64,000 bases of DNA from Takakia lepidozioides. Lineage: Eukaryota > Plantae > Bryophyta. The stretch is taken from the NCBI GenBank assembly GCA_030704615.1, contig CM060732.1:27342001-27406000 (forward strand), written 5' to 3'. Below the pieces are notes generated by a model, which saw only the letters and a program-made list of their open reading frames with translations, was not told the origin of the DNA and ran no database searches. The translations under genes were made by a program, and so were the position numbers. Of the stretch, positions 33,139-63,884 are shown in pieces. The stretch's first letter is position 1; the number at the start of each line of letters is the position of its first letter.

Positions 33139-36100
33139 CTACACCTCTATCTCACTGACATTCTCTCTGACAGGTGTGTCACTCAAATCTTCACTCACTA
33201 TGTCGGCCTTTCTCTTGCTGTCTCTATCTTCGCAGTAAAGGGTATCACGCAGTGTTGTATCATCACTTATCCTTCCCTGGTTTCCAACACCCTCACTATC
33301 TAAAGTCAGCTTCTGTTTTCCTGTCAAGCCTTGATGTTCAGTAAGTTCAAGCTGTACCTCATTGCCGGGATCATGTGGCTCTGCTGCTGCAGGTTTGCGG
33401 GTGCTGCCTCTTTCCCTTGCGGTGCTCATCAGCTGGTTTCTGCATGGATGCAGCTCCTCGCTGTCCTCATCATTGATGCCCTTGATACTCTTCAGGTGTG
33501 TCATCACCACTCCATCTACCACACTGCTTCTCTCCTCCTTTTCATTGCATCTGCCCTCTCCCTTCGTTGCTGTCCACACCATGCCCTTACCCTCTTGATG
33601 GAATGTGCTGCCCTCTCTTTCTTCAGTCACTCCAGAGCAGATCATCATCTCACAACTGTCCCTTTTGTCAAAGTGAGAGCTGCAAGATGCTTTACTTAGT
33701 AGATCTCCCACTGTATTGACGCCAGGGTATAGCTCAAATCTCATTTTTCGCTCCTTTGATATCTCTTTTGCAGGTTGTGGGATGCTCATATCTGTCAAGC
33801 CTGAAAAAGGTACCTCCATCTCTCCTTCCATTGTCTCATTAACACACACACTCTCGTTGTTTATCAGTTGGCCCAGCTCAAAACTAAAATCTTGAGTTAT
33901 GTCTGTCCCCTTGACTTGTCCCAGCCTTGCCACTTTAGAGGTTGCAGAATAGTGTCAATGAAGAAGTGTACGCTAATCAACTCCCTCCTGAACTGCCATA
34001 GAGCCCATACAAGAAGGTAATAGTGCAACTCATCGTCACTTCTCTCGTTGTATCTAACAACTGCCCTGTTTTTCTTTGCTGCAAGGACATATCTGCCTTC
34101 CTGACGTGTAAACAGTGCAACAACAAACCAATCTCCTTCCCAATACAGCTTCAACACAGTTTCAGGTATTTCCCTTCCCACTTGTGTCATATTGATTTCC
34201 ATCTCCTCTGTCTCTTCAGCCTTGCCTACGGGAAACCTACTAAGGGCGTCCACGTTGGCATGTTTGCTACCAGGTCTGTGGATGCTGCGGAATTCAAAAT
34301 CCTGCAGCATAATCCATCTACCTCGCCTCCCATAAGCATCACTAACTGTAGCTAACCACTCTAGGGGTTTATAGTCAGTCCGAACCAGAAACGGTGTGCC
34401 ATTATATAGTACTGGCGGAAATGAAGAACTCCCCACACTAGTGCATAACACTCTCCCTCTATAGGATGGTACTTCTTTTGCGCATCCGATAGTGTTTTAC
34501 TGGTGTATGCAATGACATGTTCTTTCTTCCCTCCTTCTGTGATAGTATGGCACCCACTCCCTTAGCTGACCAGTCCACGTCCAAAATGAAAGGCTTCGTG
34601 AAGTCTAGCCTTACCAAGATTGGTGCTTCAATGAGTTTTAGTTTCAGCCCCTCGAAGGCATTGTGGGCTTGGGCACCCCATTTGTACTTAGTATCCTTCT
34701 TTGTCAGCTCAAACAAAGGTCCAGCAATATGCGCATATCTCTGCACATATTCACGGTAGTACCCCGTCATCCCCAGGTATATTTTTACTCCCGTGCCATT
34801 CTTAGGTATTGGGAATCGCTCGATGGCTATAACCTTGTTGGGGTCTGGCCTGACTCCCTCTTTTGACACTATGTGTCCTAGGAATGCGAGCTCTTGCCTC
34901 CCAAATTTGCACTTGTCAGGGTTAAGTTTCAGATCATGTGCATTCAACCTCTGTAGAATTCCCTCCACATGTTGTACATGACTCTCCCAATCTGCACTGT
35001 GGACATTAATATCATCCACAAACACCTTTGCACAAAGTTTTATCTCCTCTGCCAGTATGTTGTGTGAGTCAAAAGGAGGTAACGAGGGAAACACGGGAGA
35101 ACCCCATGGGCAAGACAAGGAAATTGGGGTTTTGTGCTTAAGGAACGATGGCGGGCTAGCTGGATGAAATCGCAATTTATCATTGGAGTTAACAAGATGA
35201 AATTGACAAAATTTTCATCAGCGGATGGACGGTGGAAAATTTGGATGACAAGCAGGGATGAGATCACTAATTGACATTAGTGGATGGATGACGAGCTAGC
35301 AGGATGACAGGGCGATGAAAGCACCAATGAAAAAGTTGATTCTTCATCGCATGGGGATGATACTGCGGAAATAAGACAAATGACTCAGTGGTGATTTAGT
35401 GGGTAGAGTGGCCACAATAATATTAGCTAGGTGGCACTAAGATAAAAGGTGGATAGAAGGAGGCACACATCGCCTTAAGATGTATTTAGCAACAATCAGG
35501 CCTGTGGCACAGAGGGGAATAAAACCCGGTGGCCACTAAGTTTTTAAGCCTAAGGTTGCAGCTGATTAAGTTGTGGGATCTACTTATTAAATGATCACGT
35601 GGAGTGTCGACATAGATAAGACCAAGTTTATGATGTCAGGTATAAGACGAGTGGTTGCGCATAGTCACGGCTCTCAGATTTTTGGGACTAGCTTATCATC
35701 ATTCTGGAGTGAGCACTAGAATCAGCTTGGTGTGAAGTAAAATGTATCCAGTGACATAGAGGTGGTGTTATGATGGTTAGCTAAAGTGTTTTGTGAGGAC
35801 TAACTCTCATGCATTGAAGCAGCTGATTTGCGTTTATACAAAGAGAGGCTGCAGGCTTAGCTGCTTTGTTCCTTTCCAAAGGTCAGGTGATTATATTGGG
35901 TGACTCCAATGCCCGGGTGGGTAGGCTGTGGTGTACTAAGAATATTGAACTGATACCAATATGTAGTAGGGTAGTTTCTCCATGCACTTCTCTGCAAAGC
36001 CAAGTTAGACATATGTGTTAATACTGGAGCAAGACATGAACACTAGAGGGTCGGAAATAAGCATCACGACAGGCATGTTGCGACAGGTGAATGGTGCAAA

Positions 36101-38810: not shown

Positions 38811-39661
38811 TGGCTACATCCTCATTGTCGCTCCATTGTTGTAGATGTAAGGTTCACGATTTGAGTATGAGACAGATTCCATAACCGCATTGACCTGTTT
38901 CATGGATATTTTGTGGAAAATGTGTGGCAACTATCTTTATGAAGATCTGATGGCGACCTTGTATGTAATTGTTGTGCCAGATCGATGGAGTTCACGCCAT
39001 GGCAATGGTCGATCTAAGCTGTGGGGAGCAGAGGCAAGCAGAGGCGGGAAGCAAGAAGCATGAAGCGCGTGGATGAATGCATGGAAGTGACATGTAGAAT
39101 GTGGATGGAATGTTCTGGATGATAATGTATAACATTCATCCAAACTGCGCAATCAGGTGCGCAGTATTGGGAACATTATTGAGAACTGCGCACTTTTAGG
39201 ACGCTTTACCATACTTGTTGCCGAACCAGATCGTATATCTACATGTACACGCATACGGGTAAAAAGTATAGATTATAGCATGCATGGGCTATGATTCATC
39301 GCGTGGGATATCGATTCCCTGTCATGGCCGCGGGGTATTACAGTCCTTGCGCAGGGTTACTTAACATTCCCTAACCGGGCAAGCACAAAGGATCGCTGTT
39401 CGTATAAAAACCAAGTTTTGGAATCTGCCCGCGCAAGGGTGAAAGCTTGGCCTCCGACATGTGCGCCCGCCCAGCACAACTACAGGCGTAAGCTGGTTTA
39501 GCATAGCATTTGTGTACGAACATTTGGACATGTTCGTATGTTCTCAATTGTAGAGTCCAATGGAGCCCAAACTGACTTGCGTGAATGTTGTTGAAAGCTC
39601 ACCAGCACCGCTCCGTAAAGAAACTTGTCAAAATGATGCTGTCGGATTTTCGGGCACAAAG

Positions 39662-40022
39662 GTCTACCGTGGAGCGTGGAGCAGAGCTGGCATGAGTTTT
39701 TTCAAGATCCTTCACGATGGTAGGACAACCGCAATCGCAAGGTGTGGCTTTCTTAATGTACGAAGTGAAGAAGTTTGTCCATCCTACAATTGTGGGGTCT
39801 TCCTGTTAGTATCATGATTTGGTATTTTCCCTGGTGTTTACAAGGTACTTGGGAGGGTCAGCTTGGTCTTTGAGGCCGTGTTTCAATCTATGGCTGCTCA
39901 GCTGCACCGTGGTGGCTCTCACAGACCAATTCGAGATCACCTGACTACAGACACAAGCAGCACACAGGAAAGGTCCTTTGGGGTTGATGGTCAGTTGAAT
40001 CCTCCATGGGTCAGGACACAAG
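39662..40022 (+). pseudogene. Degenerate first OSB-type PDF motif (two exons) upstream of PPR copy 1
   Basis: EQSWHEFFQDPSRW*DNRNRK|GT, then CAG|TNSRSPDYRHKQHTGKVLW(+1 frameshift)VDGQLNPPWVRTQG|GT. Confidence 0.75.
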
Positions 40023-40193
40023 GTCAAGAACAATGTGGTGAGGGCACCTTCGTCTTCAACCTATTTCAGCCTGTTTTGCCCTCTTATGAGAGTCGTCCCT
40101 GATTTTTCATCTTGAATCCTACGAGTAAGCTCGTTGGGTGGATCTATGGTGGTTTGGAGTGATTTTGACATGTTACTGCCAATGTGGCAACAG

Positions 40194-43102
40194 GAAAGTA
40201 TCCAAAAACAGATAACAGAGATGAGGAGAAGCTTTGGAATGAATATTTTTCCGACCCCAGTCAATGGTGGGACAATCGCGACAATAAGGTGAATGCCTGT
40301 TAGATTACAGAGAGAACCAGTCACAATTCAGAGAACTAGTGTGGTAAGTAGGGTTGCGTTGCTTGCAAGAACAAATGTAGCTGTCATTGTCAGCTGCTAG
40401 CAGCAAGCCAAGGATGGATGCATGATTTGTGCAGAGGCAGGGATACCTGAAGGAGCAGGGATAGAGTGTGGGTCCAGATTCATCCAAGAAAGCCGGATTT
40501 CAAGCACAAGATTACCTATGATTTGCTGTGGATCGATAGCTACAAGAAACCTGCATCGGTAGATGCTCAACTGGAAGCAGCAGCAGCAGGGCCGGCACAG
40601 CTGATAATATCAGGCACCTCGACCATGACTAAAGCTTCCAAAAGAGGACCAAGAGAGGGAGTCCACAATGCCACTTTTGGCACTTCTGGGCATGTGAGGA
40701 TGCTCTGCGAGGCAGGGCGACTGAAAGAGGCTCTACAGACTTTAAACCAAGGAGGCATTTTAGCAGACTCGGATACTTATGTCTGTCTCTTGCAGAAATG
40801 CATCAAGATGAAAGGCTTGGAAGCTGGAAAGCAGGTGCACACTCACATTATTAAAAGTGGATTCAAGCCAAACGTTTTTCTACACAACACCCTTGTCAAC
40901 ATGTATGTTAAGTGTGGGAGCATTGCTGATGCTCACCAAGTGTTCACCAGAATGCCACAACGAGGTTTGATCACATGGAATATAATGATTACAGGATTTA
41001 CCAAGCATGGATGTGGTGGGAATGCTTTGGAGACATATGAGCAAATGATGCGGGAAGGGGTGAAACCTGACCACATCACGTTTGTTTGTGTTTGCAATGC
41101 GTGTGCGAGCCTGGCTGCCCTGGAAAAGGGCAAAGAGGTCCATGGTGACATCGTGAAAAGTGGAATTGTACCAGATGTCATTCTGAACAATACCCTCGTG
41201 GACATGTATGCCAAATGTGGGCGCATCGAGGATGCAAAGGGAGTGTTCAACAATATGGCTGAACGAAATGTGGTGTCGTGGAGCGCGATGATTGCAGGAT
41301 ATGCACAGCAAGGGCGCGGGATGGAGGCTTTGGAGACCTATGAGCAAATGATGCGGGAAGGGGTGAAGCCCAACCACATCACGTTTGTTTGCGTTTGCAA
41401 TGCATGTGCGAACCTGGCAGCCCTGGGAAAGGGCAAAGAGGTCCATGGTGACATCGTGAAAAGTGGAATTGTACCAGATGTTGTTCTGAACACTGCTTTG
41501 ATGAACATGTATGTCAAATGTGGGAGCTTTGAGGATGCAAAGGGAGTGTTTAACAGTCTGACAGAACGGGATGTGGTGTCATGGAGCGTGATGATTGCAG
41601 GTTATGCACAGCAGGGGCGCGGGATGGAGGCTTTGGAGACCTATGAGCAAATGATGCGGGAAGGGGTGAAGCCCGACCGCATCACGTTTGTTTCCATTTG
41701 CAATGCGTGTGCGAGCCTGGCATCCCCGGGAAAGGGCAAAGAGGTCCATGGTGACATTGTCGAAGCTGGAATTGTACCAGATGTTGTTCTGAACACTGCT
41801 CTGATGAACATGTATGCCAAATGTGGGTGCATCGAGGATGCAAAGGGAGTGTTCGACAATATGGCAGATCGGGATGTTGTGTCGTGGAATGCAATGATTG
41901 CAGGATATGCACAGCGGGGGCGCGGAATGGAAGCTTTGGAGACCTATGAGCAAATGATGCAGAAAGGGGTGAAGCCTGACCGTATCACGTTTGTTTGTGT
42001 TTGCAATGCGTGTGCAAGTATGGCAGCCCTGAAAAAGGGCAAAGAGGTCCATGGTGACATCCTGAAAAGTGGAATTGTACCAGACGTCATTCTGAACAAT
42101 ACCCTTGTAGACATGTATGCCAAATGTGGGTGGATCCAGGATGCAAAGGGAGTGTTCGACAATATGGCTGAACGAGATGTGGTGTCCTGGAACACGATGA
42201 TCGCAGGATATACCCAGCATGGTTGTCATAGGGAGGCCCTGCAACTATTTGAAGGACTGCTAAAGGAAGGCTTGAAGCCGGACAGTATCGCCTTTATTTG
42301 TGTTCTCTCTGCATGCAGCCATTCTGGCCTACTGGATGAAGGAAGACGCTACTTTGATTCCTTGAGTCAAGATCATGATGTCACTCCAACAGTAAAGCAC
42401 TTTGGCTGTATGGTGGACCTTCTCGGACGTGCGGGGCAATTGGACGAGGCAGAGGACCTCATTAATAAAATGCCAATCAAACCAGATACTATGGTGTGGA
42501 AGGCCTTGCTTGGTGCCTGCAGAATCCATGGCAATGTGGAGATGGCTGAACGTGCGGCAACATCTATTCTGAAGTGGGATGAACAGGATGCTGCGACTTA
42601 TGTGTTGCTATCAAACATCTATGCCGCAGCTGGCAGGTGGGACGATAGTGCAATGGTAAGAAAAATGATGAAGGTCAGAGGGGTCAGAAAGGAGGCAGGT
42701 CGCTGCTGCATTGAGGTTGGCGACAGGGTGCACACCTTTGTTGTAGATGACAATTTGCATCCCCAAATTAAGGAAATCCATGCTGAGCTGAGAAGATTGT
42801 CTGGGGAGATGAAGGAGGCAGGGTATGTGCCCGACACGCGCTTTGTATTGCATGATGTGGGGGAGGAGCAAAAGGAATATTCTCTTTGCCACCACAGTGA
42901 GAAGTTGGCCATTGGTTTTGGGCTGATCAGCACAGCCCCTAGGACGCCTCTCCATCTCATCAAGAATCTTCGGGTGTGTGGTGACTGCCACACCTCCACC
43001 AAGTTCATCTCAAAGATTGTTGGCCGAGCAATCGTTGTACGGGACGCTAACCGCTTTCACCACTTTGAAGATGGGGTTTGTTCTTGTGGGGATTACTGGT
43101 GA
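40194..43102 (+). CDS. PLS-class PPR-E-DYW RNA-editing-type protein with N-terminal PDF motif (copy 1)
   Basis: Exon 40194-40288 (KLWNEYFSDPSQWWDNRDNK), GT-AG intron 40289-40477, exon 40478-43102 (IHPRKPDFKHKITYDLLW, five MY[AV]KCG-containing PLS modules, HSEKLA, CGDCH, CSCGDYW*). The true start codon is uncertain. Confidence 0.92.
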
Positions 43103-44449
43103 AATGATGTTTTTCTGCAAAGGTGCATGTCTAAGGTATGGTGGGGATAGAGGTGGCCCCTTGTACACCAACACATATCAGTAAGCTGGCTTTCCATAAA
43201 GTCTCTCAAGAAGGCAGATAAGGGGTCCTTTTCCTGGTATTCTATATGTACTCTGTCACATCTTCTCGCAAGAATAGAGTTGAAGGTATCTTCTAGGAAT
43301 GGAATAGTGTCTTGGTTGAAAGGCTAGTGATGAATTGAGAGTCCTGACAGATCTCGACCTCTTGATCCAATCTGCATGCTACTTTCCCCAAAAGCATTGA
43401 ATGCTCTGCCAAGGAAAGGAGAATTCCACCCTTGGTGTAGGAGTTGGCCATCAAACAACAGCTCATTACAAGGCAGAGTGGATGTTGTGATGACATTGCC
43501 CTCAAAGCCAGAGGACCGGTCAACCGAGTATATCTTCCTCTCCTCTTCCTCCTAGTTTGGTGTAATTTTACTGATATGAATTCAACTGCCATGATGGCAC
43601 AGGAGCTCACACACAAAATTTTGAGTCCAAAATGGAGATATTGAACAGTTATCGAGGAATGGTTGAGATAAAGTGGTTCACTTTTCTTAAAAGTGGATAT
43701 TTAGGGGAGCTTTGGGATCAGCAGCTCAAGTAGTTATTGAGAACACTATGAGTCATGCCAGCGACCAACAGTAACGCCATGCACAATTGTTTCTGAAATC
43801 TGGACTCGACCTGTAGACAATTGTGTTCGGAAGTGGGTGAAGTAGCTGACTCTGTCCCCTTAACCTTTGAACTCCAACACGCACAGACCCATGTTATAGT
43901 GTGAGGGAGTCATTCAAAGCCAATTCATGCTGCATCAATTGTACCCAAGTACAATGACAATCACTATGTGAACTTTCAAGTGGCCAACATGGGATTGGAT
44001 CTTGGTGGGTTCAGGCTAGGTTTCGACAACATTCATGCAAGTTAGTCAAGGGCTCAATCTGAAGAAGCTCCGCAAGAAACATACAACATGTGTGTGGAAC
44101 CCTGGAGACCTAAGGAGTACCAACAGTCCACTGCCTTTGCAAAAAATTTCAGGATCCCCCCAAACTTTTGCGCAGGGCTGCCCCTCTAATCAGGCTCATT
44201 ACAATTTGTATTCACTTCCATCTTCAAGCTTTGGAGAAGCTCCACCACCAACACCAAAATTAGGACAGCACTCTGATTTTCTTCCCTTATCAGCAGAGTC
44301 AGTCACCCAGTCACCATTTCCTGTGGATATGCCACGGAAATGCCCTCAACAGCACATCATGGTCAATATTCTCAGGAATGAACTGAGTAGCTACACAGAT
44401 CAAAGAATGAAGCAAGGCATCCGCACCTTTCCAGAAACAAAACAACGTT

Positions 44450-47400
44450 TCACCAGTAATCCCCACAAGAACAAACCCCATCTTCAAAGTGGTGAAAGCG
44501 GTTAGCGTCCCGTACAACGATTGCTCGGCCAACAATCTTTGAGATGAACTTGGTGAAGGTGTGGCAGTCACCACACACCCGAAGATTCTTGATGAGATGG
44601 AGAGGCGTCCTAGGGGTTGTGCTGATCAGCCCAAAACCAATGGCCAGCTTCTCACTGTGGTGGCAAAGAGAATATTCCTTTTGCTCCTCCCCCATATCAT
44701 GCAGTACAAAGCGTGTGTCAGGCACATACCCTGCCTCCTTTATCTGCCCAGACAATCTTCTCAGCTCAGCATTTATTTCCTTAATTTGGGGATGCAATTT
44801 GTCATCTACAACAAAGGTGTGCACCTTGTTGCCAACCTCAATGCAGCAGTGACCTGCCTCCTTTCTAACCCCTCTGACCTTCATCATTGTTCTCACCTTT
44901 GCACTATCGTCCCACCTGCCAGCTGCGGCATAGATGTTTGATAGCAAAACGTAAGTCGCGGCATCCTGTTCATCCCTCTTGAGAATACATGTTGCCGCAC
45001 GTTCAGCCATCTCCACATTGCAATGGAGTCTGCAGGCACCAAGCAAGGCCTTCCAGACCACAACACCCGGTTTGATTGGCATTTTATTAATGAGATCCTC
45101 TGCCTCATCCAATTGCCCCGCACGTCCAAGCAGGTCCACCATACAGCCAAAATGCTTCACTGTCGGAGTAACACCATGATCTTGACTTAGGGAATCAAAG
45201 TAGCGTCTTCCTTCATCCAGCAGGCCAGCGTGGTTGCATACAGAGAGAACACACGTAAAGGCAATACTGTCCGGCTTCATGCCTTCCTTTTGCATTCCTT
45301 CAAATAGTTGCAGGGCCTTCTTATGACAACCATGCTGGGCATAACCTGCAATCATCGTGTTCCAGGACACAACATCTCGTTCAGCCATATTGTCGAACAC
45401 TCCCTCTGCATCCTTGATACACCCACATTTGGCATACATGTCCGCAAGGGTATTGTTCAGAATGACATCTGGTACAATTCCAGCTTCAACAATGTCACCA
45501 TGGACCTCTTTGCCCTTTACCAGGGCTGCCAGGCTCGCACATGCATTGCAAACGCAAACAAACGTGACGTGGTTGGGCTTCACACCTTCCTGCATCATTT
45601 GCTCATAGGTGTCCAAAGCCTCCATACCCCACCCCTGCTGTGCATATCCTGCAATCATTGCATTCCACGACACCACATCTCGTTCAGCCATATTCACAAA
45701 CACTCCCTTTGCATCCTCGATGCTCCCACATTTGGCATACATGTGCACCAGGGCAGTGTTCAGAATGATGTCTGGTACAATTCCAGCTTTGACAATATAA
45801 CCATGGACCTCTTTACCCTTTTCCAGGGCTGCCAGGCTCGCACATGCATTGCAAATGCAAACAAACATGACGTGGTTGGGCTTCACACCTTCCTGCATCT
45901 TTTGCTGATAGGTCTTCAAAGCCTCCATCCCACGACCCTGCTGTGCATATCCTGCAATCATTGTGCTCCACGACACCACATCTCGTTCAGCCATATTGTT
46001 GAACACGCCCTTTGCATCCTCAATGCACCCACATTTGGCGTACATGTCCACGAGGGAATTATTGAATGACATTTGGTACAATTCCAGCTTTGATGATATC
46101 ACCATGGACCTCTTTGCCCTTTCCCAAAGCAGCCCGGCTTGCACACGCATTGCAAACACAAACAAGCGTGATGTGGTCGGGCTTCACCCCTTCCCGCATC
46201 ATTTGCTCATAGGTCTCTAAAGCCTCCATCCCACGCCCCTGCTGTGCATATCCTGCAATCATCGCGTTCCACGACACCACATCTCGTTCAGCCATATTAT
46301 CGAACACTCTCTTTGCATCGTCAATGACCCCACATTTGGCATACATGTCCACGAGGGCACTGTTCAGAATGACATCTGGTACAATTCGTGCTTTGACAAT
46401 GTCACCATGGACCTCTTTGCCCTTCTCCAAGGCTCCCAGGCTTGCACACGCATTGCAAACGCAAACAAACGTGATGTGGTTGGGCTTCCCCCCTTCCTGC
46501 ACCATTTTCTTGTAGGTCTCCAAAGCCTCCATCCCACGCCCCTGCTGTGCATATCCTGCAATCATCGTGCTCCATGATACCACATTTCGTTTAGCCATAT
46601 TGTCAAACACTCCCTTTGCATCATCGATGCACCCACATTTTGCATACATGTCCACAAGGGTATTGTTCAGAGTAACATCTGGTACGATTCCACTTTTCAC
46701 GATGTCACCATGGACCTCCTTGCCCTTTCCCACGACTGCCAGGTTCGCACATGCATTGCGAACGCAAACAAACGTGATGTGGTCGGGCTTCAACCCTTCC
46801 CCTATCATTTGCTCATAGGTCTCCAAAGCCTCCATCCCACGCCCCTGCTGTGCATATCCAGCGATCATTGCATTCCATGACACCACATCTCGTTCAGCCA
46901 TATTGTTGAACACTCCCTTTGCATCCTCGATGCACCCACACTTGGCATACATATCCACGAGGGTATTGTTCAGAATGACATCTGGTACAATTCCAACTTT
47001 GATAATGTCACCATGGACCTCTTTGCCCTTCTCCAGTGCTCTCAGGCTTGCACACGCATTGCACACACAAACGAACGTTATGTGGTTGGGCTTCACCCCT
47101 TCCCGCATCATTTGCTCATATGTCTCCAAAGCATTCCTACCACACCTATGCTTGGTGAATCCTACCATCATTATATTCCACGTTATCAAAGATCGTTGAG
47201 GCATTCTGTTGAACACTTGGTGAGCATCCATAATGCTTCCGCACTTAACATACATGTTGACAAGGGTGTTGTGTAGAAAAACGTTTGGCTTGAGTCCACT
47301 TTGTATAATGTGAGCATGCACCTGCTTTCCAGCTTCCAGGCCTTTCATCGTGATGCATTTTTGCAAGAGACAGACATAAGTATCTGAATCTGCTGAAATG

Positions 47401-48669: not shown

Positions 48670-51273
48670 TGTCATTAGTGCATACAACAAAGAGGAGCAC
48701 AAATCAGATATCATGAATGATATCCAGGCTATGCACTACCTGACTTTCGAAGAAATCAATGAGTATCTCAGCCATTGAGAGGAAAAGAAACAGGTGACCC
48801 TTCTATTTTGATATCTCTTAATCCTCAATCATATTGATGAAGGACTCGGACAGATAAGAGAATGAACACTTGCACAGCGGTTGGGGTGGTGGCATTTCCG
48901 ATATCGACAGTTCGGACAGTACATGCGGGAGATATGATGCCAGACTTTTCCTGCAATTGTCGTTCTATTACGAACCATTCCATTGGTCCCTCACCATTGA
49001 TTCTGTCCTTGTAGGAGCGGTGCTTGGATTCCGACACGGACATGCCGAACACGAATATGGTAGAATCAGTCCACTCCTCCTGGCGAGCGTCTTTTGCCGC
49101 ACATTTGGTGGACGTAGTGACGGCCACAACGGATGACATCAATAGAGCAATCATGCAGCAAGCCACGTACTGCAAGTTCCTGAGCGGGAAACAATGGGGC
49201 TTTGGGCTGGACAGGGAGGAATTGTTGGTACGAACAGCTTCGAGGTCAAACAATCCATTGAAATGGGCGACGACATTGCAAGAGAAGATCAAAGGGACGC
49301 CTCTGCACCGCAGAGGTGAACACCTAGAGGGGGACGTCTGTACTCACCATGTGAGACGGAGGATTGAAGAGGATTCCGGGTGCGAAGAGGATTCCTGGAG
49401 ATCCGACAGGAACATTCGGACAGCACCTCGAGGTCCTGTTATGTTGCCGCACAATGTGTCTTCCAGCAGTGGAAGCCCAAGAGTTTCCAGATCGCCATCG
49501 CCTTCAAGCAGGGATTCCGTCCGAGAAATTTCCACCGCTCGCTTGCCCCAGATTCCGCCCGCTGTTATGCAGTATGGCCAAGCCATTGTGGAGACGACTG
49601 TGTCTGCGTCACAGTGGAGAATTGCTCGCACAAAGCCGGCGTTTCGAGGCAGGTGTTCCGCAATTCGAGTGGATACACGACAACGTTGTTTAGAGATGAT
49701 AAGGAGGAATCTAGATGGGGTTGTCCCTGCTCCTACTTTTACAGGAAGATTTGTCCATGCAAAGCTTACGGAGGCGACAACCACGCAGTTCTGGTTCTGC
49801 AGACATGACATTATGACTTGCGTGTATGGAAAGCCCAAGTACGGCATACAAACAATGCCAGAGGCTCCCCCTTATGTTGAGGCTGACGCCCTTACTGCCG
49901 CATGATTTCGGATGGTGCAGTGCACTGACGTCCCCAGACAACCATTTTCACTTCCACAGCCTCCACCACCAACCCCTGTGGTAATGGGATGCAACAACTC
50001 TAAGCATCCTACACACCATTGGGGGAAACCGAAGAGGCGGCGACCTCCCTCAAAAGTGAACGAGACAAGGATGAGGAATGCACTTCGGATGAATTGTACA
50101 ATCCAGAACTCGACGGAAGTGCCTCCACCAGGCTTCGGGCGTGTGTATCAGATGGCCACGGCAGGCTCAGCTGTTCGTAATGAGGTGTACACCATCACCA
50201 TTTCAGAATTACCCACCTGCAATTGCACCGACTTCCAGATCATGGCGAAGAAGGGGGCATCATACTGCCCTTGCAAGCATCTATACTACGTGTACCTAAA
50301 GAGACTCCGATGTAATTCCACAACTCATCACTTCATACATGCACCAGGGTTGAGCCCCCAAGATGTGTACACTCTTTTGAATATGGATCCAGGGGACCAG
50401 TGACCTTGGCTTGCGGGCCAAAACACACTGTTACGCCCATCATTTTCGGAGTTTCAGCTATAGTAGAACTGTACTGCTGCAAGTACCTCTGACTTTGGCC
50501 ACAGAAATGTTCGACTTATGTCTCTCCTATCAGTAACCTGTTTTGCTCGAACTAAAATAATACTATGTCATTAACTTGTGTTTCCACGTGCTTGTATTTT
50601 TGTTTGTTGGAGAGTTCCTGTTTTTCTGCTTTCCCAAACTTTGTTTTCCTCATTCCATCCCCGGCAAGGAAATGCGGCGCCGCATTTCCAAATAACGTCG
50701 TAGGTACTGGTAGTTGCGGCCTTCGTCATAGCAAAATAGTCGCATACAGTCTTCAGGGAGCCGACTGTCGCCAACAGCGAACCCCCCAGAAATTTCGCAC
50801 GTGCGAACTGTAATGTGGCACCGCATTTCCCAGTTGACTCGCAAACCTTTCCCGCCGAATACCCGAAGATGACAGAATTGTGAAATACTGCAGATTCTAT
50901 TGGTTCAATCGCGGCAGAAGGGTCAGCTTCATGTAAAACCGCGGAATACTCTATACAGGCCAGTATGCGACGTTCTTTTGCCATGGTATACTGGATTTCT
51001 CGTTGCACGGTCACTCATTTCCATCAGTGGATCTAAACAACCATGAGCAGAGTTGTTACTAACGATATATCTTCGCCGCATTACAGGATCTGGAAGTTCC
51101 AAAAACAACAAGATCAAATTAAAAAACTATTATCTTAATACTTTTTTAATTTGCCGCATTTCCAAATTTGGAGGAATCCGCTCATGAAAACTGCATGTCT
51201 TAGACTTCGGCTCATCGCTCATGCGGCTCATGGCTCATGGCTCATGGTTTCTGCTCATGAAATAGTAAACCTC
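48670..51273 (+). mobile_element. 5'-truncated Mutator-like element of a related family with intact downstream terminus
   Basis: Ends GCTCATGAAATAGTAAACCTC (reverse complement GAGGTTTACTATTTCATGAGC, cf. 8010); contains the palindrome GGAAATGCGGCGCCGCATTTCC at 50668-50689. Confidence 0.85.
48700..50403 (+). pseudogene. Mutator-like transposase 3' half with SWIM
   Basis: DMPNTNMVESVHSSW, FWFCRHDIMTCV and PTCNCTDF...CPCKHLYY; stop at 49903-49905. Confidence 0.88.
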
Positions 51274-51890
51274 CTGATGAAGGTACCTTCTTCAATACAT
51301 TTCAGCCTGAGGGCACCTTCTGGTTTGACCTGTTTCAGCCTGTTTTGCCCTCTCAGCAGACTTAGCCTTGAAATTGCATATATACTGAATTCTGTAAGTT
51401 AGCTCGTTGGGTGGATTTGTGGTGGTTTGGAGTGATTTTGGAAGTTATTGCCGAGGTGGCAGCAGGAAAGTACCTAAAAATAGATAATAGAGATGGAGAG
51501 AAGCTTTCAAGGAATGAATACTTTTTTGACCCCAGTCAATGGCGGGACAGTGTGGGTAGATGGTAAACTGGAAACAACAACGGCAACAACGCAATTGAGA
51601 CAAGGCACTGCTAATGAAGGTACATTCTTCAACACATTTCAGCCTGTTTTTCCCTATTATCAGAGTCGTCCTTAAATTTTCAGATGGCCGGATTTCAAGC
51701 TCCAGATTACCTATGAGTCCCTGGGATAGCTACAAGAAACCTATATGGTAGATGGTCAACTGGAAGCCACAACAGCAACAACAGAGGCAGGATGTATGCA
51801 TTGTTAGCGTGGAGGGAGGGGTAGCTGTTGATGTAGGGAGAGGATTGTGGGTGCAGAATCATCCAAGAAGGCCAGATTTGGAGCATAGAA
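51274..51890 (+). pseudogene. Tandem decayed PDF-motif exon/intron cassettes
   Basis: NEYFFDPSQWRD, WVDGKLETTTA, PDFKLQITYES, SYKKPIWVDGQLEA and HPRRPDLEHR; homologous to 40040-40600. Confidence 0.75.
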
Positions 51891-52348
51891 CAGCGCTGGT
51901 AGGAGTTCTATAAATATTAGCAGCGACAAACTAATCAATCAGGTACTTGCTTTTGTACTCATTTCATCCTCTTATCAACGTAGTCTCTGCTTGGACAGCC
52001 TATAGGGCTGTAAAAAACAGAACTCTACAACCTTCCAACCCAGGTGCTCTGTCATTGGCATATCAAGGTCTGATTTGAAATGCTTTCATTGCATTTTGTA
52101 GGTGAACTCATCATAGAAGAAGAGTTGGAAGTAAAAGTCTTGCTTGTTGGAGGAGATGAATCTTGTTCACTATGGAAGGTATCACATACAAATGCATCCG
52201 AGCAAAAATTCTAGGTGATGAGCTTGTCTCAGGAAAATTTCATTTCCTTTCCATGGGGGGTAGTGTTCTTTCAGCCAAGTAGGAAGAGAGGATGGTTCTG
52301 AAAAGGGATACTGTACACAATAAGATTTCAAACTGATGGGACCAAGGA

Positions 52349-57746: not shown

Positions 57747-59020
57747 CTGCAGACCCCACGCATGCAAAATTGCAGCCCCTTCTCTCCCAAGGACAATCTA
57801 TTGCAGTAAAACCTAGTGAAACCTGAACTTAAAATGCTGCTCTAATAGTTGCTTCCTGAAATGCCAAAAAGCCCATACACAAATGTAGCATTCTTCCCTC
57901 TTGAAAGCCAAACTTCCAATGTCTAAGTGAGACCTCCCTGTTTAATTAAGACATAATTCTCTTTGCCATTCTCGTATTGAAATAAACTAGCCTGAGCTGT
58001 ACCACTGTTGTTTACAATCTTTACAAGGTAAGACCCATTTCTCTTCCTTCTTTCTTTCTCACTCTGAGCAGCGATAGCAGCATTCATCTCTAACCCCTCA
58101 TATTCCTCAACTGGGCCCGAGAGCTCCTGCAGTGTGCCATGTGACATACATGAATTTTCTATAGAGCATGTGTGAAATTGCAAATCATAGAGTCTAACTT
58201 GGTGAGAATGAGACACAAAGATAGAAATGCAAACGAGAAGAAAAGAAAGAAAGAGAAAAGGAATCATGGTAATGCCCTTGAAAAGACAAGGACTTATAGG
58301 GCAATCCAGCAGAAATGTCATTCAAAACAACAAGAAACGAGGTCTACATCAGTACAGAGAGTCAGAGGATAAGTTGAAGCTGAAGAACAAAATAGCAATA
58401 TCACTGCTCATTGCACAACTGCATCATACATGCTCCCAAATCTGGTCTCAAACTGTAGATAACTGTGTTCTGAAGTGGGTCGAGTACATGGACTCTATCC
58501 CCCAACCGTGAACTCCAACATGCACAAAAAGCTTTTAATTGTGAGGGAATCATGCAAATCAAATTCATGCCGCATTAATCAATAACGGAATACCCAAATT
58601 CCATGACAGTCACTATGCGAACTTCCAAGGGGCCACCATGGGATTAAATTTTGGTGCGTTAAGGCCAGCTTTCCACAACATTCATGAAAGTTAGTCAAGG
58701 GCTATATCTAAAGCACCACGACAAACATACAAAGATGTCCAAATTTGAGATGCTGAACAAACTTGTGCACAAGGCTGCCCCTATGATCAAGCTTGTCCTT
58801 CCACTAGCACACGAGTAAATCAAAACCCCCTCTTCACTCATTACCTGCCCCAACCAAGTGTAATTATGGGCTGACTTCCCACCTATGCTGTAGACCCCAC
58901 TACCATTTCCTGTCTGCCCTCAACAGTACACTGGAAATGGTGGATGAACTCAGTAGCTACACAGATCAATGAATGAAGTAAGACAATCCCACCATCCTAC
59001 CTTTCCAGAAAAACATCGAT

Positions 59021-60060
59021 TCACCAATAATCCCCGCAAGAACAAACCCCATCTTCAAAGTGGTGAAAGTGGTTAGCTTCCCTGCTCGACCAACAATCCT
59101 TGAGGTGAACTTGGTGTAAGTGTGGCAGTCACCAAATACCCAGAGATTCTTGATGGGAGAGGAGTCCAAGGGGACGTGCTGATCAGCCCAAAACCAATGG
59201 CCACTCTCTCTCTGTGGTGGCCAAGAGAAAAATCCTTTTGCTCCTCCCCCACATCATGCAATACAAAGCGTGTGTCAGGCACATACCTTGCCTCCTTCAT
59301 CTGCACAGACAATCTTCTCACCTCAGCATGGGATTCCTCAATTTCTGAATGCAATTTCTCATCTACAACAATGCACCCTAGTTCCAACCTCAATGCAGCA
59401 GTGACCTGGCTCCTTTCTAACCCCTCCAACCTTCATCATATTTCTCAACTTGCACTATCGTCCCACCTGCCAGCTACGGCATAGATGTTTGACAGCAACA
59501 CATACGTCGCAGCCTCCAGTTCATCCCACTAGAGAATAGATGGTGCCACACATTCAGCCATCAACATTGCCATCGATTCTGCAGGCACCAAGCAATGCCA
59601 TCCACACCACAGTATTTGGTTTCATTGACATTTTGTTGATGAGGTCTTCTGCCTCATCCAATTGCCCCACACGGCCAAGAAGGTCCACCATGGAGCCAAA
59701 GTGCTCCAGTGCTGGAGTGATGCCGTGATCTTCACTCAGGGAGTTACAGTAGTACTTGCCGTCATCCACTCGGCCAGCAAGGCTACATGCAGAGAGAACA
59801 CATAGCTTGAAGCCTTCCACTTGCATTTCTTCCAATAGCTGCACGGCTCCATATCATAACCATGCTATGCATATCCTGCAATCATCAATTTCCAGGAAAC
59901 CATATTTTGCTCGGCCATACGTCGAACACTCCCTTTGCACATTTGATGCTGCCATTGGCATACATGTCGACCAGGGCACTGTCCAGACTGACATCAGGTA
60001 AAATCCCAGCTTTGATATTGTCACCGTGGACCTCTTCACCCTTTTCCAGGGCTGCCAGGA
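59021..60060 (-). pseudogene. Relic PPR-E-DYW gene (last PLS module to DYW)
   Basis: HFGSMVDLLGRVGQLDEAE, YVPDTRFVLHDV and HHRERVAIGFG (HSE lost); multiple indels. Confidence 0.88.
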
Positions 60061-60302: not shown

Positions 60303-63300
60303 TCACCAGTAATCCCCGCAAGAACAAACCCCATCTTCAAAGTGGTGAAAGCGGTTAGCATCCCGTACAACAATTGCTCGGCCCACAATCTTTGAGATGA
60401 ACTTGGTGGAGGTGTGGCAGTCGCCACACACCCGAAGATTCTTGATGAGACGGAGAGGCGCCTTAGGGGACGTGCTTATCAGCCCAAAACCAAGGGCTAG
60501 TTTCTCACTGTGGTGGCAAAGAGAAGATTCATTTTGCTCCCCACCCACATCATGCAATTCTAAGTGTGTGTCAGGCACATACCCTGCCTCCTTCATCTGT
60601 CTAGACAATCTTATCAACTCAGCATGGATTTCCTTAATTTTGGGATGCAATTTATCATCTACAACAAAGGTATGCACCCTGTTGCCAACCTCAATGCAGC
60701 AGCGACCTGGCGCCTTTCTAGCCCCTCTGACCTTCATCATTTTTCTCACCTTTGCACTATCGCCCCACCTGCAAGCTGTGGCATAGATGTTTGATAGCAA
60801 GACTAAAGTCGCGGCATCCTGTTCATCCCACTTGAGAATAGATGTTGCCGCACGTTCAGCCATCTCCACATTGCCATGCATTCTGCAGGCACCAAGCAAG
60901 GCCTTCCACACCACAGCATCTGGTTTGATTGGCATTATATCAATGAGGTCCTCTGCCTCCTTCAATCGCCCGGCACGTCCAAGAAGGTCCACCATGCAGC
61001 CAAAGTGTTTTACTGTTGGGGTGACATCATGAGTTTGAGCCAGGGAACCGAAGTAGCATCTGCCTTCATCCAGTAGGCCAACGTGGCTACATGCGGAGAG
61101 AACACATATATAGGTGATACTGTCAGGCTTCAAGCCTTCCATTTGCATTTGTTCAAATAGTTGCAGGGCTTCCCTATGACAACCATGCTGGGCATATCCT
61201 GCGATCATACCGTTCCAGGACACCACATCTCGTTCAGCCATATTGTCGAACACCCCCTTTGCATCTTCGATGCTCCCACATTTGGCATACATGTCCACCA
61301 GGGCAGTGTTCAGAATGACATCTGGTACAATTCCAGCTCTGACGATGTCACCATGGACCTCTTTGGCTTTTTCCAGGGCAGCCAGGCTCGCACACGCATT
61401 GGAAACGCAAACAAATGTGATGTGGTTGGGCTTCACCCCTTCCTCCATCATTTGCTCATATGTCTCCAAAGCCTCCATCCCATGCCCCTGCTGTGCATAT
61501 CCTGTGATCATCGCGTTCCATGACACCACATCACGTTCAGCCATAGTGTCGAACACTCCCTTTGCATCTTCAATGCTCCCACATTTGGCATACATGTCCA
61601 CCAGAGCAGTGTTCAGAATGACATCTAATACAATTCCAGCTTTGGCGATGTAACTGTGGACCTCTTTGCCCTTTTCCAGGGCCGCCAGACTTGCACACGC
61701 ATTGCAAACGCAAACAAATGTGATGTGGTTGGGCTTCACTCCTTCCTGCATCATTTCCTCATAGATCTCCAAAGCCTCCATCCCTCGCCCCTGCTGCGCA
61801 TACCCTGTGATCATGGCGTTCCACGACACCACATTTCGTTCAGCCGTAGTGTCGAACACTCCCTTTGCATCTTCAATGCTCCCACATTTGGCATACATGT
61901 CCACCAGGGCAGTGTTCAGAATGACATCTGGTATAATTCCAGCTCTGACGATGTCACCATGGACCTCTTTGCCTTTTTCCAGGGCTGCCAGGCTCGCACA
62001 CGCATTGCAAGCACAAACAAACGTGATGCGGTTGGGCTTTACCCCTTCCCGCATCATTTGCTCATAGGTCTCCAAAGCCTTCATCCCATGCCCCTGCTGT
62101 GCATATCCTGCGACCATCACGCTCCACGACACCACATCTCGTTCAGCCATATTGTCAAACACTCCCTTTGCATATTCAATGCTCCCACATTTGGCATACA
62201 TGTCCACCAGGGCAGTGTTAAGAATGACATCTGGTACAATTCCAGCTTTGACGATGTCATCATGCAGCTCTTTGCCCTTTTCCAGGGTTGCCATGCTCGC
62301 ACATGCATTGCAAATGCAAACATATGTGAAGTGGTTGGGCTTCACCCCTTCCCACATCATTTGCTCATAGGTCGCCAAGGCCTCCATCCTGTGCCCCTGT
62401 TGTGCATATCCTTTGATCATCACGTTCCATGACACCACATTTCGTTCAGCCATATTGTCAAACACTCCCTCTGCATCTTCGATGTTGCCGCATTTGGCAT
62501 ACATGTCCACCAGGGCCGTGTTCAGGACGACATCTGGTACAATTCCAGCTTTGATGATGTCACCATGCACCTCTCTGCCCTTTTCCAGGGCTGCCAGGCT
62601 TGCACACGCATTGCAAACGCAAACAAACGTGATGTGGTTTGGCGTCACCCCTTCCTGCATCATTTGCTCATAGATCTCCAAGGCCTCCACCCCTCGCCCC
62701 TGCTGTGCATATCCGGACATCATTGCGTTCCACGATACAACATTTCGTTCTGTCATATTGTTGAAAACTCCCTTTGCATCTTCCATGCGCCCACATTTGG
62801 CATACATGTCCACCAGGGCAGTGTTCAGAATGACATCTGGTATAATGCCAGCTTTGACAATGTCACCATGGACCTCTTTGCCCTTTTCCAGGGCAGCCAG
62901 GCTCGCACATGCATTGCAAACGCAAACAAACGTGATGTGGTTCGGCTTCACCCCTTCCTCCATCATTTGCTCATATGTCTCCAAAGCATTCCTACCACAC
63001 CCATGCTTGGTAAATCCTGACATCATTATATTCCACGTGATCAAACATCGCTGAGGCATTCTGTTGAACACTTGGTGAGCATCCACGATGCTCCCACACT
63101 TAACATACATGTTGACAAGAGTGTTGTGTACAAAAAGGTTGGGTTTAAATCCAGTTTGGATAATGTGAGCGTGCACCTGCTTTCCTGCTTCCAGGCTTTT
63201 AATCTTGATGCATTTATGCAAGAGACAGACATAAGTATCTAAATCTGATGAATTGCCTCCTTGCTTTAAAGTCTGTAGCGCCTCTTTCAGTCGCCCTGCC

Positions 63301-63884
63301 CCACACAGCATCCTCACATGCCCAGAAGTGCCAGAAGGGGCATTGTGGACTCCCTCTCTTGATCCTTTCTCAGAGGCTGTGGTCATGGTCGAGGTGCCTG
63401 ATTTTATCCACTGTGCCGCTGCTGCTTCCAGTTGACCATCTGCCCATGCAGGTTTCTTGTAGCTATCGATCCACAGGGAATCATAGGTAATCTTGTGCTT
63501 GAAATCCGGCCCTCTTGGATGAATCTGGACCCACACTCTATCCCTGCTCCTTCAGCTATCCCTGCCTCTGCACAAATCATGTATAGATCCTTGCCTTGCT
63601 GCTAGCTGCTGACAATGACAGCCTAGATTTGTTCTAGCAAACCCCCAACCCTACTTACCACACCAGTTCCAATGGTCAATTGCTCCCAAGACTTCAAAAA
63701 AGTGCTTGGCAGAGAGTGGAACAATTCCCAACAGAGCTATGCATTGCTACTTCTTGTCTGCTTGTGTGTGTAATCTACCAGGCATTCACCTTTTTGCCTC
63801 GATTGTCCCACCATTGACTGGGGTAGGAAAGATCTTCATTCCAAAGCTTCTCCTCGTATCTGTGATCTGTTTTTGGATACTTTC
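60303..63884 (-). CDS. PLS-class PPR-E-DYW protein with N-terminal PDF motif (copy 3)
   Basis: Exon 63884-63790 (KLWNEDLSYPSQWWDNRGKK), intron 63789-63525, exon 63524-60303 (IHPRGPDFKHK, seven PLS modules, HSEKLA, CGDCH, DYW*). The gene probably continues beyond the window end. Confidence 0.93.

Follow-up and report, generated by a model that had tools for sequence, protein, structure and literature searches.

PPR-DYW proteins are the organelle RNA editors of plants and a template for designer RNA base editors. The OSB proteins carry one to three copies of the PDF motif, a unit of approximately 50 residues responsible for their binding of single-stranded DNA (ssDNA) (PMC6963530, PMC4166229). 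The PDF motifs of OSB1 bind ssDNA, and OSB1 and OSB2 prefer ssDNA over double-stranded DNA or RNA (PMC4166229, PMC6963530). In this work, we analysed a stretch of 64,000 nucleotides (nt) of the bryophyte Takakia lepidozioides (assembly GCA_030704615.1, contig CM060732.1, positions 27,342,001 to 27,406,000 of the forward strand; hereafter the window, whose first letter is position 1), in which exons encoding PDF halves run in frame into a PPR-DYW open reading frame (ORF). The window harbours three copies of this arrangement (copies 1 to 3) and two relics (copies 4 and 5); copy 1 has a damaged upstream motif (PDF-a) and a downstream motif (PDF-b) that is joined to the PPR-DYW frame. The reading we favour, with some reserve, is that the paralogues of the region form a decaying local cluster and belong to an old gene family of seed-free plants that has no name as yet, and that PDF-b of copy 1 is most likely untranslated.

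In copy 1, the first PDF-b exon ends in ...EEKLWNEYFSDPSQWWDNRDNK at 40288 and is followed directly by GTGAAT; the intron that separates the two motif halves is of phase 0, with GT and AG borders (Table 1). Read from the acceptor (40477/40478), the second exon opens with 49 codons, IHPRKPDFKHKITYDLLWIDSYKKPASV and a linker, ahead of the first in-frame ATG at 40625, and no stop occurs from 40478 into the 878-codon ORF at 40466-43102 (+). Pfam recognised eleven PPRs in this ORF, followed by E, E+ and DYW_deaminase (PPR_2, 6e-97; PPR, 2e-83; E_motif, 1.5e-16; Eplus, 2e-5; DYW_deaminase, 4e-42). The first PPR helix begins only approximately 25 residues after Met 40625, and all three copies have the motifs HSE, CGDCH and CSCGDYW. 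The initial annotation had reconstructed the PDF across a phase-0 GT-AG intron and described a run without stops from its second half into the PPR-DYW ORF. Direct reading of the sequence gave the same result in copy 1 and copy 3, with junctions at 40288/40478 and 63790/63524, and all of the coordinates given there hold, including those of copy 3 (63884-63790, then 63524 onward).

Exons were used singly in the searches, and statistics were summed over the separate exon alignments. The N-termini encoded by exon 2 in the three copies were made into a profile, which, in a search of 1.84 billion representative proteins, retrieved 99 at E<=1e-3 (15 at E<=1e-10), including an OSB3-named protein of Chenopodium quinoa and one of 500 residues in which three PDF motifs follow a Pfam SSB domain. 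The assignment of the motif to the OSB PDF was thus borne out. A hidden Markov model (HMM) was then built from 122 PDF motifs of the non-PPR, OSB-like matches (consensus KEELWKDLFENPSEWWDNRKEKKNPKAPDFKHKETGEALWLDSATPEWVKEKLE) and run against all 2735 six-frame pieces of the window (Table 1). The exon 1 and exon 2 matches were complementary, and the halves abut exactly at the intron. PDF-b of copy 1 scored 32.6 and 30.9 bits, level with genuine OSB motifs. Because the OSB protein collection used exon 2 only, the exon 1 match constitutes independent evidence. These data confirmed that the PDF halves beside the PPR-DYW ORF are real, beyond chance.

Other searches were negative. Pfam has no PDF model, and the exon peptides matched 0 families. 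A word-based protein search with residues 1-60 of the exon 2 ORF gave no match at E<=0.01, a limit of sensitivity and length, as the profile search succeeded. A feature search of the ESM Atlas with a 51-residue piece returned noise (scores <=0.80), and no record matched exactly the product that begins at the Met. No SSB family match was found in the ORFs of copies 1 and 3 or in the larger upstream ORFs, where small exons could escape detection. PDF-like repeats were also encountered in proteins of other architectures: a dozen in tandem, with no OB fold, in a 908-aa JGI metagenome protein (P0008); eleven, with a weak SSB match, in a Kingdonia uniflora protein of 1160 aa (P0007); and PDF-like stretches in a Coptis chinensis kinesin-motor gene model of 1526 aa (P0054), which may be a mis-joined model.

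The combination of PDF and PPR is common among the relatives of these genes. Homologues were counted among the best 120 PPR homologues of a search with the whole last-exon ORF, in which no protein exceeded 57% identity and the best matches were from the lycophyte Diphasiastrum (55-57% identity). An N-terminal PDF was present in 32 of the 120 (full-length matches, E 1e-21 to 1e-25), 14 of them ending in DYW. It was found in 30 of the 48 named proteins from seed-free plants (Diphasiastrum, 25 of 34; Sphagnum, 2 of 2; Ceratodon, 1 of 2; Calypogeia, 1 of 2; Adiantum, 1 of 6; Ceratopteris, 0 of 2) vs. none of the 55 from seed plants (Cryptomeria, 'Gb_', which is Ginkgo by prefix, Taxus and Typha); the other two bearers are metagenome proteins with no species name. 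A survey of PDF and PPR architectures had been proposed in the initial annotation, and these counts bear on it. The exon 2 profile also retrieved PDF and PPR proteins, among them KAI5061374.1 of Adiantum capillus-veneris, an Adiantum nelumboides protein and O6H91_01G119900 (KAJ7570437.1) of Diphasiastrum complanatum, which has eleven isoforms. Isoforms of O6H91_01G119900 and O6H91_12G041000 have two PDFs, one PDF or none, and relatives may thus be able to include the module or leave it out through alternative starts or splicing.

The gene plan is also conserved. A Logan contig of 4755 nt from run SRR4210093, whose product was also retrieved by the exon 2 profile, contains an uninterrupted ORF of 1371 codons with three unsplit PDFs and PPRs; it has the look expected of a spliced transcript, although it has no poly(A) tail. 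In the Diphasiastrum locus L002, exon 1 encodes Met and a presequence, PDF1 and PDF2 are each split after ...DK, and the last exon comprises the second PDF half and the entire PPR array. The PDF2 intron of L002 (89 nt, GT-AG, 4147/4237) has the same position as the intron in copy 1. In several Diphasiastrum proteins, an intact PDF is preceded by a degenerate one, and the first PPR helix reads LCE.GRLKEAL, as here. The genes of the window share the family traits of N-terminal PDF(s), a last PDF half within the PPR exon and a phase-0 intron at residues 22/23. In a tree of 59 motif instances, 26 of the 26 PPR-linked PDFs formed one clade (support 0.88) apart from the 33 OSB-type PDFs; its neighbour was a bryophyte-type OSB fragment (P0021). 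This topology fits a single early capture, with the alignment short and the sampling dominated by Diphasiastrum. Judging from these comparisons, the in-frame junction of PDF and PPR-DYW is an ancestral coding arrangement, not a local accident, and many annotated liverwort, moss, lycophyte and fern proteins share it. No paper describing the combination was found in the literature searched; the architecture is old, widespread in seed-free plants and apparently undescribed.

The 5' module of copy 1 is damaged. The initial annotation had noticed a second, decayed PDF further upstream, with a stop or a frameshift; both are present, the stop in the first half of PDF-a and a +1 frameshift in the G run 39979-39982 of its second half. 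The PDF-a halves are separated by a phase-0 intron (39741/39925), and a phase-1 GT-AG intron (40038-40193) puts the shifted end of PDF-a in frame with exon 40194-40288. There is no in-frame ATG in the canonical exons of copy 1 (39983-40037, 40194-40288 and 40478-40624), and exon 40194-40288 contains three out-of-frame ATGs. Consequently, no frame stays open from a start codon through the PDFs into the PPR array, given the TAG at 39721, the frameshift at 39979 and the lack of an in-frame ATG across 40194-40624. Upstream, the single in-frame ATG (39890) falls within the PDF-a intron, and copy 2 reads ACG at this place. The homology between copies 1 and 2 starts at 39487/48669, approximately 175 nt ahead of the first PDF exon and probably inside a former intron 1, and therefore at most one of the two copies retained the ancestral first exon and promoter. 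When the N-termini of 20 family members were used as tblastn queries, neither a first exon nor a presequence was detected upstream of 39652, which is weak evidence because presequences are poorly conserved. A 50-nt mini-intron (39614-39663) linking the ATG at 39560 in frame to PDF-a was also considered and was rejected as too short and unsupported.

Substitutions were distributed differently in the two parts of the gene. Between copies 1 and 3, the PDF-b exons had 4 synonymous and 16 nonsynonymous changes (ratio of nonsynonymous to synonymous rates, dN/dS or omega, 0.98) vs. 127 and 150 in the PPR-DYW frame (omega 0.29; Fisher p 0.034 for the comparison of counts). Nucleotide divergence between the same copies was 10.7% and 7.2% in the PDF exons, similar to the values for the non-coding sequence upstream (10.2%) and for the intron (11.4%). 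In the C-terminus of the PPR part, branch omega was 0.48 in copy 1 (34 nonsynonymous and 20 synonymous changes vs. 3.6:1 expected), 0.31 in copy 2 and 0.33 in copy 3. Copy 2 is dead (see below) and still shows a low ratio; the branch ratios therefore mostly reflect the time before recent inactivation.

We consider it probable that PDF-b of copy 1 is not translated, and that this copy either encodes a PDF-less protein from Met 40625 or died recently, because PDF-a is broken, there is no in-frame ATG, the first exon is cut off and dN/dS of the PDF exons is close to 1. This probably makes true of copy 1 a caveat raised at the outset, namely that translation might start at the downstream Met and exclude the PDF; the position of the homology start, so close to the first PDF exon, points the same way. 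The interpretation as a fusion thus fared differently at two levels: it holds for the gene family, which shares it in many proteins and in the intron position of Diphasiastrum, and probably not for copy 1, with its decayed 5' module.

Several observations weigh against an untranslated PDF-b. The module of copy 1 retains all 7 invariant residues and 7 of the 8 near-invariant ones (W49 is changed to S), that of copy 3 keeps 15 of 15 conserved residues, and invariant PDF residues are lost only in the pseudogene copy 2; this pattern in copies 1 and 3 would suit a module that is still in use. Both copies have intact GT and AG sites, and the only exonic indel between them is of 9 nt, in frame. The dN/dS of the PDF exons, which the initial annotation had put forward as a check, did not speak with one voice: the copy 1 vs. 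copy 3 value is near-neutral and argues for decay, and the ratio summed over three branches (6.5 synonymous and 16.5 nonsynonymous changes in PDF-b) is approximately 0.6 and not significantly unlike that of the PPR part, the branch counts being too small to be decisive. The ATG at 39890 is in frame with PDF-b thanks to the frameshift. Moreover, five out-of-frame ATGs precede Met 40625 in any transcript with the PDF exons, and therefore efficient PDF-less translation from a PDF-containing transcript is also disfavoured.

Much of this could be accommodated if copy 1 were a working PDF-PPR-DYW gene, which we regard as possible and rather unlikely. Its transcript would begin within the PDF-a region or upstream of it and provide a start in frame with PDF-b, such as ATG 39890 or one in an unrecognised upstream exon, and the protein would have a single functional PDF ahead of the PPR array. 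The OSB-like score of PDF-b, the 14 of 15 conserved residues kept and the intact splice sites would be expected of such a gene; PDF-b is brought into frame with the shifted end of PDF-a by the phase-1 intron 40038-40193, the frame opened by ATG 39890 runs into PDF-b, and many Diphasiastrum relatives combine a degenerate upstream PDF with an intact one. However, ATG 39890 is intronic and not shared by copy 2, no purifying selection is detectable on the PDF exons, and tblastn found no upstream exon. The PDF-b intron of copy 1, with a GC content of 48%, is also unusually poor in T (23% vs. 35% in the two neighbouring introns and 37% in the Diphasiastrum intron), and its acceptor region is purine-rich with no pyrimidine tract.

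Self-comparison of the window revealed the three copies, at 86-89% identity, and the two relics (Table 1). A 301-nt block (frameshift near 46167) breaks the PPR array of copy 2 into two ORFs, AA replaces AG at the acceptor of PDF-b, the residues PDF are changed to TDV with the loss of two invariant motif residues, and exon 2 of PDF-a has a deletion of 8 or 9 nt. Copy 2 is considered dead because of the frame-shifting block, the AA acceptor and the lost invariant residues. Copies 1 and 3 are open over 825 and 1027 codons from Met, with catalytic residues intact and 14% nucleotide divergence, and the Pfam PPR matches were stronger in copy 3 than in copy 1. The locus is a decaying cluster of the family, and copy 3, whose 5' end lies beyond the window, is the best candidate for an intact PDF-PPR-DYW gene.

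Table 1. Positions of the PDF-PPR-DYW copies in the window and of their parts; HMM refers to the model built from OSB-type PDF motifs.
Feature	Position	Strand	Details
Copy 1	39487-43126	+	PPR-DYW ORF intact; 5' module damaged
Copy 1, PDF-a first half (...SWHEFFQDPSRW-stop-DNRNRK)	39667-39741	+	TAG 39721-39723 in frame; GT donor 39742; HMM positions 2-15, cut by stop
Copy 1, PDF-a second half (SPDYRHKQHTGKVLW / VDGQLNPPWV)	39925-40037	+	Acceptor CAG ends 39924; donor GTGAGG 40038, phase 1; HMM positions 22-40, E 7e-5
Copy 1, PDF-b exon 1 (GKYPKTDNRDEEKLWNEYFSDPSQWWDNRDNK)	40194-40288	+	Phase-1 acceptor; HMM positions 2-24 at 40226-40294, E 7.3e-9
Copy 1, intron inside PDF-b	40289-40477	+	189 nt, phase 0, GT-AG, ends CAG; between motif residues 22/23
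Copy 1, PDF-b second half (IHPRKPDFKHKITYDLLWIDSYKKPASV) and linker	40478-40624	+	Continuous with PPR ORF; HMM positions 24-53 at 40481-40573, E 1.4e-8
Copy 1, PLS-PPR-E-E+-DYW frame	40625-43102	+	First in-frame ATG (TSTMT) to stop, 825 codons
Copy 2	48669-44423	-	Pseudogene, tail to tail with copy 1
Copy 2, PDF-b exon 1	47936-47868	-	HMM positions 2-24, E 4.3e-8
Copy 2, PDF-b exon 2	47672-47583	-	HMM positions 25-53, E 7.6e-5
Copy 3	window end to 60276	-	ORF intact; 5' end beyond window
Copy 3, PDF-b exon 1 (...EEKLWNEDLSYPSQWWDNRGKK)	63790-63884	-	HMM positions 2-24 at 63852-63784, E 2.9e-6; further 5' part beyond window
Copy 3, intron inside PDF-b	63525-63789	-	265 nt, phase 0, GT-AG
Copy 3, last exon: PDF-b second half (IHPRGPDFKHKITYDSLWIDSYKKPAWA), linker, longer PPR array, E, E+, DYW	60303-63524	-	ORF intact, 1077 codons; HMM positions 24-53 at 63521-63429, E 3.8e-9
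Copy 4	~51200-51900	+	Heavily decayed relic of PDF exons
Copy 5	58999-60057	-	Decayed E/DYW-encoding fragment, many stops

It is improbable, in our view, that all of the copies in the window, copy 3 included, are unexpressed young pseudogenes derived by recent segmental duplication from a functional member elsewhere. The two further relics and the transposon remains nearby suit such an origin, and the branch dN/dS of 0.31 in the dead copy 2 illustrates that an open ORF with a low ratio is no proof of present function. Against this, copies 1 and 3 have stayed open, with their catalytic residues, at their present divergence, and the copy 1 branch ratio (0.48) is below neutral. It is very improbable that the PDF exons are the dead 3' end of an OSB gene beside an independently inserted PPR-DYW gene, continuous by chance or by a prediction artefact: the resemblance of PDF-b to the C-terminal PDF of the bryophyte-type OSB fragments (P0021) and the Met of the PPR part near the junction would fit, but one uninterrupted ORF joins the PDF half to the PPRs in three copies, in Diphasiastrum DNA and in metagenome ORF fragments, the architecture recurs in five plant lineages, the PPR-linked PDFs form a separate clade, and no OB-fold or SSB coding sequence was found in the larger ORFs upstream.

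The paralogues are distinguished by blocks of approximately 300 nt, each encoding one P-L-S triplet; two such blocks (46690-46388 and 46167-45867, both on the minus strand) are additional in copy 2, and copy 3 is approximately 200 codons longer than copy 1. Such differences among recent duplicates indicate that the RNA-reading array is changing in length. At the start of the DYW domain (approximately 42700-42730 in copy 1 and the equivalent positions of copies 2 and 3), all three copies read (E/A)(A/P)G(R/H)CCIEV. The usual PG-box at this position is PG.SWIE, a motif thought to be important for editing, and the departure from it is common to the three copies. Retrotransposon remains (RVT_1, 1.5e-10; RT_RNaseH_2, 2.8e-12) were detected on the minus strand at 33139-35175, approximately 4 kb upstream of copy 1.

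The structure of the motif was modelled with AlphaFold2 (P0238:1-62, with an alignment of 59 natural motif instances). The model is a compact mini-domain (mean predicted local distance difference test score, pLDDT, 91.4) with a helix at 2-10, short strands at approximately 15-17, 30-32 and 38-39, and a helix at 49-60. A Foldseek search of the PDB found no structural relative (WW-domain fragments at best, E 5), nor did an exhaustive VIA-align pass (best Z 2.9), and no mechanism can therefore be borrowed from a known fold.

The plan suggested for a gene of this family comprises a first exon with the start codon and a presequence, one to three PDFs, each split by a phase-0 intron, and a last exon in which the second half of the final PDF leads directly into the PLS PPR array, E, E+ and DYW. 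Intact members would be imported into an organelle, where the PPR array would read the RNA target and the DYW domain would deaminate C to U. The N-terminal end of a PPR array faces the 5' side of its RNA target, and the PDF may, on that side, bind single-stranded nucleic acid irrespective of its sequence or tether the protein to the nucleoid. Such a tether would place the factor where the nascent RNA appears. Copy 1 has lost the reading frame of PDF-a and probably its first exon, and would now be a PDF-less PPR-DYW gene read from Met 40625 or a young pseudogene. Mosses lack the non-PPR editing helpers (PMC9459714); together with the absence of the module from the 55 seed-plant homologues, this makes a helper-like role of the PDF attractive. 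A speculative and, to our mind, unlikely extension is that a large share of the PPR-DYW factors of seed-free plants carry the PDF as a built-in anchor for single-stranded nucleic acid, either coupling editing to the nucleoid or the nascent transcript or taking the place of the MORF-type helpers of seed plants, and that it would be an undescribed ancestral part of the editosome. In a more radical version, the PDF might let the DYW deaminase act on single-stranded organellar DNA. The roles suggested in the initial annotation, a tether of editing to nucleoids or R-loops or a deamination directed to ssDNA, would likewise be hypothetical.

These results describe an ancient and frequent natural fusion of PDF and PPR-DYW that apparently went unnoticed although its sequences are public under the name 'hypothetical protein'. 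The fusion raises a testable question, namely how editing factors function in bryophytes, lycophytes and ferns without the helpers known from seed plants. The locus also illustrates gene turnover, with local duplication, changes in the length of the PPR array and a 5' module that decays first, and the PDF module of approximately 50 residues has a fold predicted with high confidence for which no solved relative was found with Foldseek or VIA-align.

Compared with the OSB proteins, the PDF described here follows the same pattern (W..F..P..WWDNR..K..P..PDFKHK.T...LW....P.W), is reciprocally retrieved by profile and can likewise number one to three per protein. In OSBs, the PDFs are C-terminal and are preceded by a transit peptide and an SSB-like OB fold; by contrast, this family has no OB fold that could be found, the PDFs are N-terminal and form a clade of their own, and a PPR-DYW part follows. 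The latter resembles the PLS-class PPR-DYW editing factors, with a PLS array, E, E+ and a DYW domain with HxE, CxxCH and the terminal DYW. Most PPR genes are described as intron-poor, and the small 5' exons set the genes of this locus apart from them. A moss review of 2022 gives RRM, LAGLIDADG, SMR, NYN, CBS and SAP as accessory domains of PPR proteins and does not list the PDF (PMC9459714). The public PDF-PPR models have a start codon and a presequence, whereas in copy 1 no open frame leads from a start codon into the PDF; both share an intact PDF preceded by a degenerate one. The domain order, the linker and the LCE.GRLKEAL helix are shared with Diphasiastrum KAJ7570437.1, Adiantum KAI5061374.1, Ceratodon purpureus M758_12G068300 and Sphagnum fallax BDL97_05G031600, and the intron positions of the Diphasiastrum PDF-PPR gene are identical to those described here.

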